IMG/VR virus record: IMGVR_UViG_3300037882_001770 | Coordinates: 62,001-126,000 of that record | DNA: 64,000 nucleotides | Strand: one strand, 5' to 3' | Shown: piece after piece, positions 3,216 through 62,971 of the stretch | Position numbering within the stretch: position 1 is the stretch's first letter | Layout: each line of letters starts with the position of its first letter | Translations under genes and position numbers: made by a program | Notes under the pieces: generated by a model | Database searches by the model: none | What the model was told of the DNA's origin: nothing | Seen by the model: only the letters and a program-made list of their open reading frames with translations

Positions 3216-3244
3216 TTGCAAAACCCAAAATTATCCTGTATACT
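3216..3244 (+). promoter_or_regulatory. sigma70-type promoter, probably leaderless transcript
   Basis: TTGCAA-17-TATACT, ATG at 3252 only 7 nt downstream. Confidence 0.6.
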
Positions 3245-3251
3245 TGATGAT

Positions 3252-4268
3252 ATGACAAATCTATTTCGTAAGACTGCGGTCTGCACAGACATACATTTTG
3301 GATTAAAATCAAACAGTCTTGTACACAATCAAGACTGCTCTGACTTTATTGACTGGTTTATTGATACAGCCAAAAAACAAGGGTGTGAAACCGGAATGTT
3401 TTTAGGCGATTGGCATCATCATAGAGCCAGTATTAATCTACAGACCCTGCATTTTAGTTTAAAAAGTTTACAAAAACTATCTGCGGCATTTGATAATTTT
3501 TATTTTATTCCAGGCAATCACGATCTGTATTATCGAGACAAACGCGACATACACGGAGCAGAATGGGCTCAGCACTTGCCCAATATTCATGTGGTCAACG
3601 ATTGGTTTCACGAAGGCGGTGTAACCATTGCTCCGTGGCTGGTCGGCGATGACCACAAAAAAATACAGAAACTAAACAGTCAGTATGTATTTGGCCATTT
3701 CGAGTTGCCGCACTTTAAGATGAATGCCATGGTAGAAATGCCCGATCATGGAGAGATTCACGTAGATCACTTTAGCGGAGTAGGCGAAGTGTATTCTGGG
3801 CATTTCCATTTGCGACAAAACAAACGCAATATCAACTATATCGGAAACTGTTTCCCCCACAACTTTGCCGACGCCGGCGATGCGGCCCGTGGCATGATGG
3901 TACTAGAGTGGGGGAAACCTGCAAAATACCATGCATGGCCCGGACAACCCCTGTATCGTGTGCTTAAACTGAGCCAGGTCATTGACGATGCGTCCAGTAT
4001 GCTGGCCAGCAACATGCATGTTCGGGTAGAGTTAGACATTGATATCAGCTACGAAGAAGCTAATTTTATTAAAGAAACCTTTATCAAAGATTATAATTTG
4101 CGAGAGATGGCACTGTTACCGGTCAAGAGTACTGCGGTAGATTTAGATCTTGCCCCAGGCGAGATCAAGTTTGAAAGTGTCGACCAAATTGTCACAGATC
4201 AAATCACCAATATTGAGTCTGAGTTTTATGATCCAAAGTTATTGTTAAAAATATATCAAAATCTATGA
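3252..4268 (+). CDS. Recombination nuclease subunit gp47 (Mre11/SbcD-like)
   Basis: Metallophosphoesterase motifs TDIHFG, GDWHH, PGNHD, GHFE, SGHFH; start reassigned to MTNLFRK. Confidence 0.92.
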   Translation: MTNLFRKTAVCTDIHFGLKSNSLVHNQDCSDFIDWFIDTAKKQGCETGMFLGDWHHHRASINLQTLHFSLKSLQKLSAAFDNFYFIPGNHDLYYRDKRDIHGAEWAQHLPNIHVVNDWFHEGGVTIAPWLVGDDHKKIQKLNSQYVFGHFELPHFKMNAMVEMPDHGEIHVDHFSGVGEVYSGHFHLRQNKRNINYIGNCFPHNFADAGDAARGMMVLEWGKPAKYHAWPGQPLYRVLKLSQVIDDASSMLASNMHVRVELDIDISYEEANFIKETFIKDYNLREMALLPVKSTAVDLDLAPGEIKFESVDQIVTDQITNIESEFYDPKLLLKIYQNL

Positions 4269-6028
4269 TTCATATAAAAAATCTAACTGTTAAAAACTTC
4301 ATGAGTGTGGGCAATGCTACCCAAGCTATTGATTTTGACCGCACTGATCTTACCCTGGTACTAGGTGAAAACTTGGATTTGGGTGGTGACGGCAGTCGTA
4401 ACGGCACCGGTAAAACTACAATTATTAATGCTCTTAGCTATGCGTTGTACGGGCAAGCCTTGAGTAACATTCGTAAAGACAATTTAGTAAACAAAACCAA
4501 CGGTAAGAACATGCTGGTCAGCCTAGACTTTATAGTAGGTAGTCAAGAATATCGAATCGAACGTGGGCGCAAACCTAACGTGCTAAAGTTTTATGTAAAC
4601 AACAAAGAACAAGAAATTACCGACGAGGCACAGGGCGACTCGAGAGAAACGCAGGACGCTATTGAGCACACTTTGGGATTAAGCCACGACATGTTCAAAC
4701 ACATTCTAGCACTCAACACTTATACTGAGCCATTCTTGAGTCTTAAAGCAAACGATCAACGCACTATCATTGAGCAACTGCTGGGCATCACAATGTTAAG
4801 TGAACGTGCTGACAAGATTAAAGAACTTAACAAACAAACCAAAGACGGAATTACACAAGAAGAATTTCGGATTCGTGCAGTTCAAGAAGCCAACAAACGC
4901 ATCGAGGAACAGATCGAATCACTTAAACGCAGACAAGTCATGTGGGTGACTAAACATGAAGAAGAGAAAACAAAACTTGAGGCCGCGCTGGCAAGCCTGC
5001 AAGAGATTGACATTACAGCTGAGATTGCGGCACACAAAGAACATTCAGCTTGGGACCAGAAGCGCAAGGATATCAACGAACTATCAGGAGCTATTAGCCG
5101 GGCAAAGACGGATACCGATCGAGAGAATAAAGCCATTGTCAAACTGGAGGCGGAGATTGCGTCGCTTGAAGCTCATACATGCCATACGTGCGGTCAAGCC
5201 TTCCACGACTCCAAGCACCAACAGGTGTTGGCGGGTAAGCAGAAAACTTTGGCAGAGGCGAGAACAGCAAGCCAAGAACATAGCGTTCTCCTATCAGAGC
5301 TACAGGTTGCCCACGACTCCTTGGGCACGTTAGGTAAACCACCTAAAATGTTCTACGACAAAGAATCTGATGCTATTCATCACCAAGCCACATTGACCAA
5401 TTTAGAAAAACAAATTGCCAACAAGGCCACAGAAGTAGATCCGTATACTGAACAAATTGAAGATATGCAACACCAAGCCCTCCAGGAAATCACTTATGAC
5501 ACACTTAATGAACTTACTCGTTTGCAAGAGCACCAAGAATTTCTACTCAAACTGCTCACCAGCAAAGACAGCTTTATCCGCAAAAAAATTATTGAACAAA
5601 ATCTTAGCTATCTAAATGCCAGACTAACACATTATCTAGATCGTGTAGGTTTACCACACACCGTAGTGTTCCAAAATGATCTAACTGTTAGTATCGAAGA
5701 ACTGGGGCGCGAGCTAGACTTTGACAATCTAAGCCGTGGTGAGCGCAATAGGCTGATCCTAAGCATGAGCTGGGCATTCCGTGATGTATTTGAAAGTCTA
5801 TACCAACCCATCAACTTGTTGTTCATAGACGAGATGATTGACAACGGTCTAGATACATCGGGTGTAGAAAATGCGCTGGCATTGCTAAAACAAATGAGTC
5901 GTGAGCGCCACAAGAGTATCTGGTTGGTCAGTCATAGAGACGAACTGGCTGGTCGAGTAGAAAACATTCTCAAAGTGGTCAAAGAAAATGGGTTTACCAG
6001 CTATAATACTGACGTAGAAATTTCATGA
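4265..6028 (+). CDS. Recombination ATPase gp46 (Rad50/SbcC-like)
   Basis: Walker A GSRNGTGKTT, coiled coil with CHTC zinc hook, signature LSRGE, Walker B LLFIDE. Confidence 0.95.
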   Translation: MIHIKNLTVKNFMSVGNATQAIDFDRTDLTLVLGENLDLGGDGSRNGTGKTTIINALSYALYGQALSNIRKDNLVNKTNGKNMLVSLDFIVGSQEYRIERGRKPNVLKFYVNNKEQEITDEAQGDSRETQDAIEHTLGLSHDMFKHILALNTYTEPFLSLKANDQRTIIEQLLGITMLSERADKIKELNKQTKDGITQEEFRIRAVQEANKRIEEQIESLKRRQVMWVTKHEEEKTKLEAALASLQEIDITAEIAAHKEHSAWDQKRKDINELSGAISRAKTDTDRENKAIVKLEAEIASLEAHTCHTCGQAFHDSKHQQVLAGKQKTLAEARTASQEHSVLLSELQVAHDSLGTLGKPPKMFYDKESDAIHHQATLTNLEKQIANKATEVDPYTEQIEDMQHQALQEITYDTLNELTRLQEHQEFLLKLLTSKDSFIRKKIIEQNLSYLNARLTHYLDRVGLPHTVVFQNDLTVSIEELGRELDFDNLSRGERNRLILSMSWAFRDVFESLYQPINLLFIDEMIDNGLDTSGVENALALLKQMSRERHKSIWLVSHRDELAGRVENILKVVKENGFTSYNTDVEIS

Positions 6029-6074: not shown

Positions 6075-6503
6075 ATGGTATGGCTTTATGAACAAAAACA
6101 AATCGAAACACTACCCGAAGACTGTGTCGGTTTTGTCTATTTGATTACAAATAACATCACTGGCCGAAAGTATATTGGAAAAAAATTAGCAAAATTTAGT
6201 AAAACTTCATACAAAGTAGTAAAATTAAAGAACGGCAACAAAAAACGCAAGAAAATCAAAAGTAAAATAGATTCAGACTGGCAGCTATACTATGGCAGCA
6301 ACGATCAACTCAACAAAGACATTGCAGAGCTAGGCTCAGACAACTTCACAAGAGAAATATTATTTTATTGCAACTCAAAGGCATCCTGTAGTTACATAGA
6401 AGCTAGAGAACAATTTAATCATAGAGTATTAGAATCAGACGACTACTATAACGGACAGATTGTATGCCGTATACACGGTAGTCACATAAAAAATAAAATT
6501 TAG
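6075..6503 (+). CDS. Small GIY-YIG family nuclease
   Basis: GFVYLITNNITGRKYIGKK and YYGS...E...YN catalytic pattern; basic KLKNGNKKRKKIK insert; no NUMOD tail. Confidence 0.8.
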   Translation: MVWLYEQKQIETLPEDCVGFVYLITNNITGRKYIGKKLAKFSKTSYKVVKLKNGNKKRKKIKSKIDSDWQLYYGSNDQLNKDIAELGSDNFTREILFYCNSKASCSYIEAREQFNHRVLESDDYYNGQIVCRIHGSHIKNKI

Positions 6504-6860
6504 ATAGGCAGCTTTACTGACTCTGTGCTGGGTGTTTGATCCAGCCCCATCGAGGAACGGTGAGATACCCGGTCTAGAACTTTGGGCGTCAAAGGCAATT
6601 GCTAACTTAAGGCAACAAATGGTTAGGGCTCCGTTGAAAAAGATACGACCCTTGCTTATAGGACTTGGATTTATTATCGGGTTACTAGGGTTCCGTTGAT
6701 TTGTGAAGCTAGAGTAAGGGGTACCGGTCAACCGCCTCTGCGTTGGAAACAACAATCTCTTTATAATAAATGACTGCTGTCACTCGGATAATGTGAAAAG
6801 AAGTCAATTCACCGTATTACGGTGAATTGTGACCACATAATCTGGATAATGCTAAAGAAA
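6504..6860 (+). ncRNA. Candidate large structured non-coding RNA (boundaries and strand tentative)
   Basis: Largest gap without a credible ORF. Stems: GCTGG/CCAGC 6527-6545, CTTTG/CAAAG 6580-6594, GTTG-GAAA-CAAC 6742-6753, and the perfect 11-bp CAATTCACCGT/ACGGTGAATTG 6805-6829. Confidence 0.55.
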
Positions 6861-6944
6861 GACAAATAAAAAATTATGTGTGAGCTTTAGCGAAACACAT
6901 AGATCTCTAAGAGATCTCACATAGTCAGCACTAAATAATATACT

Positions 6945-7457
6945 ATGAAAACCCTAAGAGAAATGATGGATTTAATCGAATCTGCTCAAACAGTAGCAGA
7001 ATTCGCACCAAGCGGCATTTATAAACCGCCTGTGATTCCTCGTGAACCTGGTAAGGATCCGTTTGAAGATGATCCCCGTAGCACAACTGTATCCAAAGTT
7101 CAACAACTATTAGACGCCGGCAAGAGTGTATTTGTATTGTTACCGGGTGCTAGAGGTCGTGCAATTGGCACACAAATTGGCGACGATCACTCTTGGTTAA
7201 ATGTTCAATACAAAGGCTGGAAAGATCCTAAGACTCGCAGTAACGCTCGATTAACAGTAAATCTAAAAGCCGACGACGATTCTTCACTAACGCTAACTCC
7301 GGGTAGTCAATTCACTGACAATAAAGATCGCCCATTTGACTATACTTTATCCGGTGAGGCTAAAACCAGCGGTCGCGGATTATTTGAAGTCGAGTTAGAA
7401 GAAGAAATATCCGACGATGCTGTGCGTCGTGTGGAACAACTCGCTCAGTATAAATAA
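6945..7457 (+). CDS. Hypothetical protein, possible internal head protein
   Basis: N-terminus MKTLREMMDLIES resembles a T4 capsid-targeting sequence; TAAATA late promoter 7 nt upstream. Confidence 0.5.
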   Translation: MKTLREMMDLIESAQTVAEFAPSGIYKPPVIPREPGKDPFEDDPRSTTVSKVQQLLDAGKSVFVLLPGARGRAIGTQIGDDHSWLNVQYKGWKDPKTRSNARLTVNLKADDDSSLTLTPGSQFTDNKDRPFDYTLSGEAKTSGRGLFEVELEEEISDDAVRRVEQLAQYK

Positions 7458-7516: not shown

Positions 7517-8092
7517 TTGAAACATATTTACAATAAACTTAATCCCCCATCTGGATTCTACATCTACGCTTATATTAGAGAAAACGGAACACCTTACTAT
7601 ATCGGCAAAGGCAAGGGTATACGAGCCTGGGTAAGTCATGCTAACAAAGGCAAAGGAGCTCATACACCCAAAGACAAATCAAGAATTATAGTTTGTGAAT
7701 CTAATTTAACAGAAATAGGTGCCTTTGCGTTAGAGCGTAGATACATTCGTTGGTATGGACGCAAAGATCTAGGCACAGGTATTTTACTAAACAAAACAGA
7801 CGGTGGCGAAGGCACAGCTAATACCATTAGAACCGTATCGGAAGAAACTAAAATAAAAATTGGATCTGCTAATAAGGGCAGAGTTCAGACCGAAGAAACA
7901 CGAGCTAAACGAAGTGCGTCTCTCAAAGGAAGAAAGCCTTCAGAAGAATCAAACATTAAGCGTGGAGCAAAAGCAAGAGGTAGAGTTCTTGGCCCACAGT
8001 CAGAAGAACGAAAAGCTAAAACAAGTCTTTTAATTAAACAATGGTGGGCGGAACGAAAAGCGTTAGAATTGATCGGGCCAGTCGCGAAATAA
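7517..8092 (+). mobile_element. Free-standing GIY-YIG homing endonuclease with NUMOD3-type repeats
   Basis: [30 protein letters not shown] and [26 protein letters not shown] repeats; TTG start behind AAGGAG. Confidence 0.85.
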
Positions 8093-20271: not shown

Positions 20272-20370
20272 CATAAATACTTGTCAACGTAATACTGCGT
20301 TTTATGCGGGTAATAAACCCCCCGCGTAGCGGCTAGAACCCGCATGGGACTTCTTTAAGGAGAAAACAAA
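20272..20370 (+). promoter_or_regulatory. Late promoter and GC-rich structured 5' leader
   Basis: CATAAATA at 20272; ATGCGGGT (20304) can pair with CCCGCGT (20321) or ACCCGCAT (20338); AAGGAG SD. Confidence 0.5.
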
Positions 20371-21156
20371 ATGGGTCGTCCACTTAAAATTAAAAAAATT
20401 ATCGAAACCGGCGGTAACGGTAAAGATATCGGTTTCAATGCATTTGATCAATTGACAGCACCAACATTGCCAATTGGCGGCACTATGGAATCTAGCATGT
20501 TTCTTGGTGTAGTCGGTGGTGTTCAACCAACTACAATTGCTACGGCAGCATATCCGATTGTTAAATGCGAAGTTAACATTACTAACAGCGCCAGCGGCCA
20601 AACTCCTGGACTAATCATCCGTCAAAAAGGTGCTCGCAAATTCATGGTTGCTACAACAACCGCAATTGATCCTGAAAATGCAGTACCAAACTCAACTGTA
20701 GCGTTGCGTATTGCTGTAGTTGGCGATACAGACTGGTCGGCTATGGGTGCTCCGGTAGGATATGGTATTGGCACAATCTTTACACCAACAGCAGCATCAG
20801 CAGCGGGCACAACCGGCACAGCACAGGAAGTAGGCACATGTGTACTAACTAGTGACCTAACACCAACTGCTGGCAATATGAGCATTAGTTTCTTTGCTGG
20901 CGCATCTGATTCTACTGAACAGGCAATTAGCAAATTAACTAACAAGTTCTTGAGCGACTTTACAGGTGGTGAAACAGGCGGCAGTGCCAATACAGGCGAT
21001 GTTTGGAATCCTGCACTAGTAGCGCAAAACGTTCGTTATGATGCCAATTTCTTCAGCGACGAAGGCACAGAAATCAAGTCTGGTGCCGAAGCAGAAACAT
21101 TTGCCAACACAACTGGCCAATTAGATCTTGCTATTGTTGAAAAATACACTTCGTAA
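20371..21156 (+). CDS. Hypothetical virion structural protein
   Basis: 261 aa, Thr/Ala/Gly-rich, MGRPLK start, IIRQKGARKFMV; strong SD. Confidence 0.55.
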   Translation: MGRPLKIKKIIETGGNGKDIGFNAFDQLTAPTLPIGGTMESSMFLGVVGGVQPTTIATAAYPIVKCEVNITNSASGQTPGLIIRQKGARKFMVATTTAIDPENAVPNSTVALRIAVVGDTDWSAMGAPVGYGIGTIFTPTAASAAGTTGTAQEVGTCVLTSDLTPTAGNMSISFFAGASDSTEQAISKLTNKFLSDFTGGETGGSANTGDVWNPALVAQNVRYDANFFSDEGTEIKSGAEAETFANTTGQLDLAIVEKYTS

Positions 21157-61915: not shown

Positions 61916-62971
61916 ATGGGAAAACCATTTGACGTATCAAAGTTCCGCAAGGACATCACCAAGAGCATTGACGGTCTCAGTATCGGATTTAATGACCCCA
62001 CAGACTGGATTAGCACAGGCAACTTTGCACTAAACTATCTAATCTCAGGAGACTTTAACAAAGGCATTCCGCTAGGCAAAGTTACAGTATTTGCTGGCGA
62101 GTCTGGCGCAGGTAAAAGTTATTTCTGCTCGGGTAATATTATTAAAAATGCACAAGAACAAGGTATTTTTGTTATCTTAATTGACTCAGAAAACGCACTA
62201 GATGAAGATTGGCTCAAAGCCCTAGGTGTAGACACTAGTGATAGTAAATTGCTTAAACTCAGCATGGCCATGATTGATGATGTGGCTAAAACAATTAGCA
62301 CATTTATGAGTGATTACAAAGCTCTACCCGACGGCGAGCGACCAAAGGTGTTATTTGTAATTGATTCATTGGGCATGTTGCTAACTCCTACTGATGTTAA
62401 TCAGTTTGATGCGGGTGAAATGAAAGGTGATCTGGGTCGTAAGCCCAAGGCACTTACTGCATTGGTTCGTAATTGTGTAAACATGTTCGGTAGTTACAAT
62501 GTAGGTTTGGTATGTACCAATCATACCTATGCCAGCCAAGACATGTTTGACCCCGACGACAAGATTTCTGGCGGCCAGGGCTTTATCTACGCATCAAGTA
62601 TTGTGGTAGCCATGAAGAAGATGAAGCTGAAAGAGGACGAGGACGGCAATAAGATTACCGATGTCATGGGTATCCGTGCCGGGTGTAAAGTAATGAAAAC
62701 ACGCTATGCCAAACCATTTGAAGGCGTGCAGGTCAAGATTCCTTATGAAACAGGCATGAACCCGTACTCGGGCATGGTAGACATGGCTGAGAAACGTGGC
62801 CTACTCAAGAAAGAAGGCAACAGCCTAGTGTTTGTGACCAGCGATGGAGAAATTATCAAACAGTTTCGCAAAAAGTGGGAATCGAACGAAGGTGGGTGTT
62901 TAGATAAACTTATGGTTGATTTTAATAATCAAAAAACGGTAAGTACTGAAGACACAGCTACGGAGGAATAA
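61916..62971 (+). CDS. uvsX: RecA-like recombinase UvsX
   Basis: FAGESGAGKS, LIDSENA, VIDSLG, NHTY, ISGG; start reassigned to MGKPF. Confidence 0.93.
   Translation: MGKPFDVSKFRKDITKSIDGLSIGFNDPTDWISTGNFALNYLISGDFNKGIPLGKVTVFAGESGAGKSYFCSGNIIKNAQEQGIFVILIDSENALDEDWLKALGVDTSDSKLLKLSMAMIDDVAKTISTFMSDYKALPDGERPKVLFVIDSLGMLLTPTDVNQFDAGEMKGDLGRKPKALTALVRNCVNMFGSYNVGLVCTNHTYASQDMFDPDDKISGGQGFIYASSIVVAMKKMKLKEDEDGNKITDVMGIRAGCKVMKTRYAKPFEGVQVKIPYETGMNPYSGMVDMAEKRGLLKKEGNSLVFVTSDGEIIKQFRKKWESNEGGCLDKLMVDFNNQKTVSTEDTATEE

Follow-up and report, generated by a model that had tools for sequence, protein, structure and literature searches.

Nuclease genes that stand beside structured RNAs are known from several systems. 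In the OMEGA systems (IscB with its HEARO or omega RNA, TnpB with its reRNA) a compact nuclease gene lies next to a large structured RNA, which in the case of TnpB is found at the 3' end of the gene. Group I introns with a GIY-YIG open reading frame (ORF), such as the td intron of phage T4 in which I-TevI lies, likewise combine an ORF with a structured RNA and carry alternative endonuclease families, and in the type III toxin-antitoxin systems, such as ToxIN, a structured RNA with repeats is transcribed together with a nuclease gene. T4-like phages also have plastic regions between conserved genes in which Seg endonuclease genes (SegE, SegB) and RNA genes lie near each other, and T4 itself encodes EndoII (DenA), a stand-alone GIY-YIG-type nuclease of 136 amino acids (aa) whose cuts are followed up by gp46/47. 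Large multi-helix, pseudoknotted RNAs, GOLLD and ROOL, have been described from lake phage genomes. Here we analyze a nuclease-RNA cassette in a stretch of 64,000 nucleotides (nt) from IMG/VR virus record IMGVR_UViG_3300037882_001770 (positions 62,001 to 126,000 of that record; hereafter the window), in which the gene for a small GIY-YIG protein is directly followed, on the same strand, by a structured RNA of about 400 nt (Table 1).

The pairing resembles these known nuclease-RNA neighbours in layout only. The OMEGA nucleases are HNH/RuvC enzymes, whereas GIY-YIG is the only such domain found in our protein and the alternative neighbour is a PD-(D/E)XK nuclease; there is no Rfam HEARO match here, nor transposon ends or a guide of ~16 nt, and one RNA goes with two folds or with none. 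The guide of an OMEGA RNA is a variable segment at one end of a constant scaffold; the variable segments of the present RNA are internal twin motifs of 7 nt, for which no target or complement was found. The group I intron endonucleases have the closest fold, but no intron model matches and no host gene is interrupted. In ToxIN the order is reversed, with the RNA coming before the toxin gene; that toxin is an endoribonuclease with a different fold, and each repeat is a whole unit of 36 nt. With the T4 Seg proteins the cassette protein shares a SegE-type catalytic domain; unlike them it lacks NUMOD and helix-turn-helix (HTH) domains, is single-copy and fixed rather than sporadic, and has no T4 match at E 1e-5. 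EndoII is similar in being small, stand-alone and devoid of a separate recognition domain in a T4-type phage, but there is no detectable sequence similarity, its structure is not among the Foldseek matches, and the functional analogy used below is one that we infer. GOLLD and ROOL, finally, measure 600-800 nt, the present RNA of ~400 nt has no Rfam match, and only here are a nuclease linkage and twin variable motifs found.

The reading we favour, to which we assign a probability of about one half, is that of a co-transcribed cassette with an interchangeable DNase slot and an autonomous RNA, in which the RNA gene anchors recombination. Such a cassette would close the gp47-gp46 operon in a clade of freshwater T4-like jumbo phages, in the order of a small stand-alone nuclease gene, a gap of 4-20 nt without a terminator, and the multi-domain pseudoknotted RNA, which would be made by read-through and whose own terminal hairpins would end the transcript. 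The slot would take small DNases, either a SegE-type GIY-YIG protein with a basic beta-hairpin or a PDDEXK_15 protein, and because the nuclease gene is single-copy and apparently fixed, it would be a useful phage gene rather than an actively homing element. Because the same architecture stands behind two unrelated nuclease folds and also behind non-nuclease genes, the RNA would be autonomous and not reserved for the GIY-YIG protein as its guide or cofactor. During swaps of the slot the conserved RNA gene would serve as the right-hand recombination anchor.

The gap 3' of the GIY-YIG ORF is 441 nt long, and its sequence is kept at 77-90% nucleotide identity in dozens of IMG/VR contigs, as high as the neighbouring gene; more than 200 unique homologues of the RNA were found. 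Their alignments contain indels that are not multiples of three, together with compensatory changes. RNAalifold yielded 68 pairs, 20 of which are changed on both sides, and many G-U pairs, which place the RNA on the + strand; folding of the single sequence did not tell the strands apart (z-scores of -2.5 on the + and -3.5 on the - strand). Mutual information over 96 unique copies added the closing helix of the 5' junction, the core-closing helix and the pseudoknot, in which five of six pairs are changed on both sides, and the final model has 82 pairs in 15 helices including the pseudoknot. An RNAalifold helix at 6712-6715/6782-6785 was dropped, as the core-closing helix covaries instead. In 29 copies the 82 model pairs are 94.6% paired, compared with 38-45% when partners are slid, and 35 doubly changed pairs were observed versus 2-10 in the slid controls, a value that none of 500 shuffles reached. 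The region is structured far beyond chance.

This confirms the structured region proposed by the initial annotation, which had ended it too early (the RNA reaches ~6917) and had let it begin at the stop codon with no terminator between; the first covarying helix starts at 6519, 16 nt past the TAG stop codon (6501-6503), and no terminator-like site lies between the two on the + strand. The RNA is probably the 3' part of the nuclease transcript. It represents a new class. No Rfam family matched it, either when the whole window was searched at gathering score or when positions 6300-7100 were searched at E-values of up to 10, where only chance-level rows appeared; ARAGORN found no tRNA or tmRNA, blastn against isolated phage genomes gave no match for the locus, and no description of the RNA or of the nuclease-RNA pairing was found in full-text literature searches. 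A 17-mer scan of prokaryote genomes returned mostly chance matches in GC-rich genomes and the RNA in three loci only.

Many loci match the RNA model in its 3' half only. In the 5' half they share another sequence, about as long and conserved among themselves (type B), and two loci, L037 and L044, have yet other 5' variants in front of this 3' module. It follows that the 3' module is constant and the 5' domain replaceable; this 5' half, which adjoins the nuclease gene, is known in types A, B, C and D. At the other end, 128 of 224 relatives have a perfect hairpin ~75 nt past the second direct repeat (DR2) followed by at least 4 T in 8 nt. The corresponding hairpin of the window has no T run after it, and the only terminator-like sites of the region are on the - strand. 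In the preceding hairpin the loop, GAGC-N3/4-GCGAA, could form tandem G-A pairs around a GNRA-like mini-hairpin while the stem covaries freely; this hairpin may be a protein-binding or tertiary-contact motif.

The adjacency of gene and RNA was counted from both sides. The RNA-anchored censuses comprise two IMG/VR scans by conserved-hairpin patterns, restricted to unique copies with at least 600 nt upstream; they are a sample, and all their counts, here and below, are among the matches listed. Of the 200 unique copies counted, 196 are preceded by a small nuclease gene in the same orientation, namely a GIY-YIG gene in 183, directly adjacent in 163 of these, and a PDDEXK_15 gene in 13. For type A (n = 98) a GIY-YIG gene is adjacent in 69 copies and separated by an insert of 0.3-2 kb in 13, a PDDEXK_15 gene is adjacent in 12 and separated by an insert in 1, and 3 copies have another neighbour; for type B (n = 102) the respective numbers are 94, 7, 0, 0 and 1. 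The spacing between nuclease and RNA is mostly 4-20 nt. From the other side, 68 of 72 GIY-YIG-anchored loci with room downstream match the RNA model. Of the remaining four, two (L037 and L044) have a divergent RNA that shares the 3' module, and the other two (L028 and L068) are uninformative, as they break off within an ORF that comes after the GIY-YIG gene, like that of the loci with inserts.

The PDDEXK_15 (PF24608) proteins, about 170 aa long and recognized with E-values of 1e-24 to 1e-26, are unrelated to GIY-YIG; their genes lie 4-68 nt 5' of the RNA on the same strand. In the four RNA copies that, among the matches listed, have no nuclease upstream, the neighbour is a PNP_UDP_1 phosphorylase, a MazG-like ORF, an Mtd_N protein or an ORF on the opposite strand. 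An RNA near a PNP_UDP_1 nucleoside phosphorylase gene was seen in two other phage lineages (L093, 2460-4534; L120, 7003-7918), and this neighbourhood may be a second recurrent context of the RNA. About 10% of the loci have one additional ORF, 275-356 aa long and unmatched in Pfam and PHROG, precisely between nuclease gene and RNA (L018, 3390-4418; L023, 536-1606; L036, 3440-4453; L050, 3431-4261; L048, 3426-4451; L010, 1512-2501), and in L177 there are two of them. GIY-YIG relatives with 36-48% identity occur in cyanophages and in Melnitz and Sinorhizobium phages (Melnitz, a cyanophage, phiN3 and S-SRM01), where nhmmer detected no RNA in the loci and other genes start within 29-149 nt downstream. 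In summary, the pairing is very tight within the clade and exclusive in neither direction.

Each genome appears to hold one nuclease and one RNA. The window genome (317 kb) contains one SegE-type gene and no PDDEXK_15 gene, and the same applies to five related genomes that are 76-100% complete; five PDDEXK_15-bearing contigs have no SegE-type gene, at a completeness of only 6-18%. No empty nuclease slot was found in the 196 nuclease-downstream loci among the matches listed. Both the nuclease type and the RNA type are discordant with the tree of gp46 (a quick tree), on which the nuclease requires at least 2-4 changes (PDDEXK_15 at least 2 switches) and the RNA at least 4; hence lineages have exchanged the cassette or parts of it. 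One locus, L139 (2526-4447), contains a full-length SegE+NUMOD3 gene, a truncated PDDEXK_15 remnant and then an RNA with an altered middle part, which looks like turnover of nuclease genes at the site.

The ORF upstream of the RNA in the window is intact. The only Pfam match of its product is PF19835, SegE_GIY-YIG (E 1.7e-32; 112.7 bits versus a cut-off of 25), with residues 3-129 aligned to profile positions 1-123 of 123, and PHROG 447 matches with an E-value of 2.9e-37. The latter family is mislabelled "NAD synthetase", a label that GenBank relatives widely bear at odds with the GIY-YIG domain and that has apparently been propagated from PHROG 447. The AlphaFold2 model is confident (pLDDT 89); its best meaningful Foldseek matches are structures of the I-TevI catalytic domain, 1ln0 and 1mk0, with probabilities of 0.98 and 0.91 and weak E-values of 0.1-0.3, and a sequence search of the PDB gave one marginal match only. 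In the alignment of relatives (A2) the residues G19, F20 and Y22 as well as Y33, I34 and G35 are invariant, and E109 and N126, which we equated by eye with I-TevI E75 and N90, are nearly so. Owing to this conservation of the active-site motifs the protein looks catalytically competent, judged from its sequence.

Pfam revealed no NUMOD, HTH or other additional domain, the chain ends 13 residues past the GIY-YIG domain, and the model has no second domain, so the absence of a DNA-recognition tail that had been noted initially was borne out. The protein is basic (isoelectric point 9.3; 25 Lys and Arg versus 16 Asp and Glu). The Lys/Arg-rich stretch that had been described as an insert, KLKNGNKKRKKIKSK, is present, but it is a family feature and no private insert, since it is nearly invariant across relatives (A2 alignment; a 357-aa SegE+NUMOD3 relative has a shortened version) and forms a long beta-hairpin, residues 40-66, in the AlphaFold2 model. 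Intact frames and identities of 70-94% show the GIY-YIG protein to be well conserved. Among isolated phages, 239 genomes encode short relatives (130-146 aa), all below 60% identity, including cyanophages, Melnitz and phages of Sinorhizobium, Stenotrophomonas, Cellulophaga and Flavobacterium. The nuclease is thus a new, tail-less variant of a known family.

The most peculiar feature of the RNA is a pair of direct repeats, DR1 and DR2, situated 58 nt apart, whose 7-nt core is identical in both within every RNA. A repeat-based search found identical cores in 141 of 141 unique RNAs, a number that rose to 227 with the type B scan; this search itself required identical cores, and independent support comes from the mutual information in the alignment. 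In all 96 aligned copies position 6786 has the same letter as 6844, and 6790 the same as 6848, yet these letters vary between copies, as a per-copy table also shows. At least 15 versions of the core exist across RNAs, for example GGATAAT, AGATGAT, GGATGAA, ACATGAA, ACGAAAT and GTCGGAA. The twin motifs thus covary by identity and not by complementarity. Their complement has no consistent site inside the RNA, and neither the complement nor extra direct copies showed positional enrichment within 3 kb. A role as promoter elements was rejected, the motifs not being enriched in the window and the spacing to an upstream GTGAC being too short for a sigma-70 promoter. By eye, several copies seemed to place the DR1 core in the loop of a hairpin, but a strict minimum free energy test showed this in only 40 of 227, and it is not established. 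The twin motifs might share a partner in trans, in the manner of a seed or guide, offer one protein two sites, take part in pairings that exclude each other, or have to be identical for some strand-exchange step.

Table 1. Coordinates of the cassette, its parts and the upstream gp47-like and gp46-like genes in the window
Feature	Position	Strand	Basis
gp47-like phosphoesterase (recombination nuclease subunit)	3216-4268	+	Metallophos
gp46-like protein (recombination nuclease subunit)	4265-6028	+	SMC_N/AAA_23
Stand-alone SegE-type GIY-YIG nuclease domain protein, 142 aa	6075-6503	+	Pfam, PHROG, AlphaFold2, Foldseek
Lys/Arg-rich beta-hairpin, codons for residues 40-66 (12 Lys and Arg in 27 residues)	6192-6272	+	Alignment, AlphaFold2, composition
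Structured RNA, type A, family absent from Rfam	6519-6917 (~400 nt)	+	Covariation, G-U pairs, homologues
5' three-way junction	6519-6590	+	Helices 1-4; mutual information pairs 6519-6590, 6528-6544, 6558-6571
Junction parts: closing helix; hairpin; helix; hairpin	6519-6521/6588-6590; 6527-6545; 6546-6549/6583-6586; 6554-6575	+	Covariation model
Pseudoknot: hairpin loop 6671-6676 with 6764-6769	6671-6769	+	Helix 9; mutual information pairs 6671-6769, 6675-6765
Core-closing helix	6711-6714/6757-6760	+	Mutual information pair 6711-6760
Most conserved hairpin, common to types A and B; search anchor	6717-6739	+	Invariant columns in alignment A1
Direct repeat DR1 (CTCGGATAATG)	6783-6793	+	Repeat search, mutual information
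Conserved hairpin between DR1 and DR2	6805-6829	+	Helix 15
Direct repeat DR2 (TCTGGATAATG)	6841-6851	+	Repeat search, mutual information
Hairpin with covarying stem and conserved GAGC...GCGAA loop region	6876-6900	+	Alignment; motif in 191 of 224 copies
Final perfect hairpin of the module	6901-6917	+	Terminator-like in many relatives

Several observations weigh against the cassette with an autonomous RNA. The region around the cassette is highly plastic, with up to 5 kb inserted between gp46 and the nuclease gene and with differing downstream genes, and still direct adjacency is kept in ~88% of copies among the matches listed, sample though these censuses are; in such surroundings this could reflect selection for a functional link. 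The protein has no recognition domain, something else may supply its specificity, and the twin 7-nt motifs act like a specificity determinant. As to the role of the nuclease, no T4 protein matched it at E 1e-5 in the isolated phage collection, and the idea that the DNase of the slot may cut DNA that gp46/47 then processes is an analogy with T4 EndoII only.

These observations lead to the alternative that survives best, a functional partnership. Whatever small nuclease is encoded upstream would be bound, regulated, scaffolded or targeted by the RNA transcribed with it; specificity would come from the twin motifs, and the GIY-YIG protein would grip the RNA with its basic beta-hairpin. We regard this as the less probable reading. 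It would account for the same-strand small nuclease upstream of nearly every RNA, mostly 4-20 nt away, for the persistence of this adjacency where all else is in flux, for the conserved basic hairpin on a protein without DNA-recognition domain, for hypervariable motifs that are always identical within one RNA, and for the single nuclease and single RNA per genome. A specific interface is, however, hard to reconcile with a type A RNA that serves the unrelated GIY-YIG and PD-(D/E)XK folds; moreover, the RNA occurs without a nuclease in the four loci mentioned above, four checked phages of other families have a GIY-YIG relative with this basic hairpin and no RNA, an unrelated ORF separates gene and RNA in about 10% of loci, the motifs have no complement within 3 kb, and 7 nt alone are too few for a guide.

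The initial annotation had suggested, as a speculation, that the RNA could be a cofactor or guide of the GIY-YIG protein itself, to be checked by co-occurrence and by a variable guide-like segment and to be abandoned if gene and RNA occurred independently. The link is indeed tight within the clade (68 of 72 loci counted from the gene, 183 of 200 from the RNA), and a variable segment exists in the form of the twin motifs, which are short and for which no target was found. On the other hand, 13 RNAs follow PDDEXK_15 and four follow non-nuclease genes among the matches listed, and at larger evolutionary distance gene and RNA do occur independently, as seen in Melnitz, the cyanophage, phiN3 and S-SRM01. 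Because the RNA follows an unrelated fold and non-nuclease genes, and because the protein family and its hairpin occur without the RNA, a dedicated GIY-YIG ribonucleoprotein is disfavoured, and the RNA is probably not a dedicated guide for this enzyme.

According to a second alternative, which we consider unlikely, the nucleases are selfish free-standing homing endonucleases beside a target RNA gene, and adjacency results from the choice of the homing site and from co-conversion. SegB sits among the tRNA genes of T4, our protein belongs to the SegE family, and two unrelated nuclease families are found at exactly the same site, in L139 even as a SegE+NUMOD3 gene beside a truncated PDDEXK_15 remnant. 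Homing would also agree with the discordance between cassette types and the gp46 tree, with the replaceable RNA half (types A to D) being the one next to the nuclease gene, with a second GIY-YIG/NUMOD3 gene 600 nt downstream in the window, and with the phiN3 relative sitting among annotated homing endonuclease genes. But there is no empty site in 196 nuclease-downstream loci among the matches listed, the gene is single-copy in all six near-complete genomes, unlike sporadic active homing genes, the protein is 70-94% identical with intact frames, and it is without the DNA-binding domain to which Seg enzymes owe their preference for certain sites.

A bolder and improbable version of the partnership is a new kind of modular phage nuclease with the RNA as its specificity or scaffold subunit: the fast-evolving twin motifs would pair with a nucleic-acid target, and the RNA would recruit the upstream GIY-YIG or PD-(D/E)XK domain. 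If true, RNA-directed cleavage would extend to nuclease folds in which no use of RNA has been known. That ORF and RNA are a group I or II intron, or its remnant, with a homing endonuclease ORF is largely refuted and very improbable: a GIY-YIG ORF by a large structured RNA with alternative endonuclease families is the classic intron pattern, but no Rfam intron family matched even at E-values of up to 10 with permissive filters, no host gene is split (the upstream gp46 is complete and the downstream genes vary), and the RNA lies at the end of the transcription unit, facing convergent genes in many loci. Finally, decayed coding sequence of a C-terminal DNA-binding domain, such as Seg proteins normally have, or a small unannotated ORF (ORFs of 55 aa on the + and 106 aa on the - strand overlap the region) has next to no probability and is refuted by covariation, the indels not being multiples of three, the helix substitutions being compensatory, the nucleotide identity matching that of the neighbouring gene, and the same region following PDDEXK_15 and non-nuclease genes.

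The source record of the window is a 317 kb virus record, estimated to be 89% complete, and related contigs measure 262-347 kb, two of them with terminal repeats; the host clade of the cassette is therefore one of freshwater jumbo phages, and it is T4-like. Homologues of gp47 and gp46 lie 5' of the cassette in most related loci, at varying distance, and where convergent genes face the RNA, as in many loci, the RNA is the end of the transcription unit. The RNA is also present on contigs binned into metagenome-assembled Bacteroidota genomes (L270, Haliscomenobacter; L237, Flavobacteriales; L289); these contigs, together with the GIY-YIG relatives in Cellulophaga and Flavobacterium phages, hint at Bacteroidota as hosts.

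Downstream of the RNA, the second nuclease ORF of the window (7517-8092, + strand; GIY-YIG and NUMOD3 in Pfam), located 600 nt 3' of it, is a typical free-standing homing endonuclease, and its relatives occupy varying positions in related loci. An ORF of 170 aa between the two (6945-7457) has no Pfam or PHROG match, and its position is not conserved in relatives. Elsewhere in the window, a full-length freshwater-2 RNA (20285-20373, + strand; 69.3 bits versus a gathering score of 49.9) directly 5' of an ATG is the sole match to Rfam 15 at gathering score.

RNAs of such size and conservation have often proved to be ribozymes, scaffolds or regulators. What is unusual about this one is its near-obligate place behind a minimal nuclease of either of two unrelated superfamilies and its motifs that co-vary as identical copies. 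If nuclease and RNA cooperate, they would represent a new principle for nuclease targeting; if they are independent, the cassette would be a clean natural case, from jumbo phages of which little is known, of a nuclease gene replaced in place by a non-homologous one with a conserved RNA gene as the anchor.

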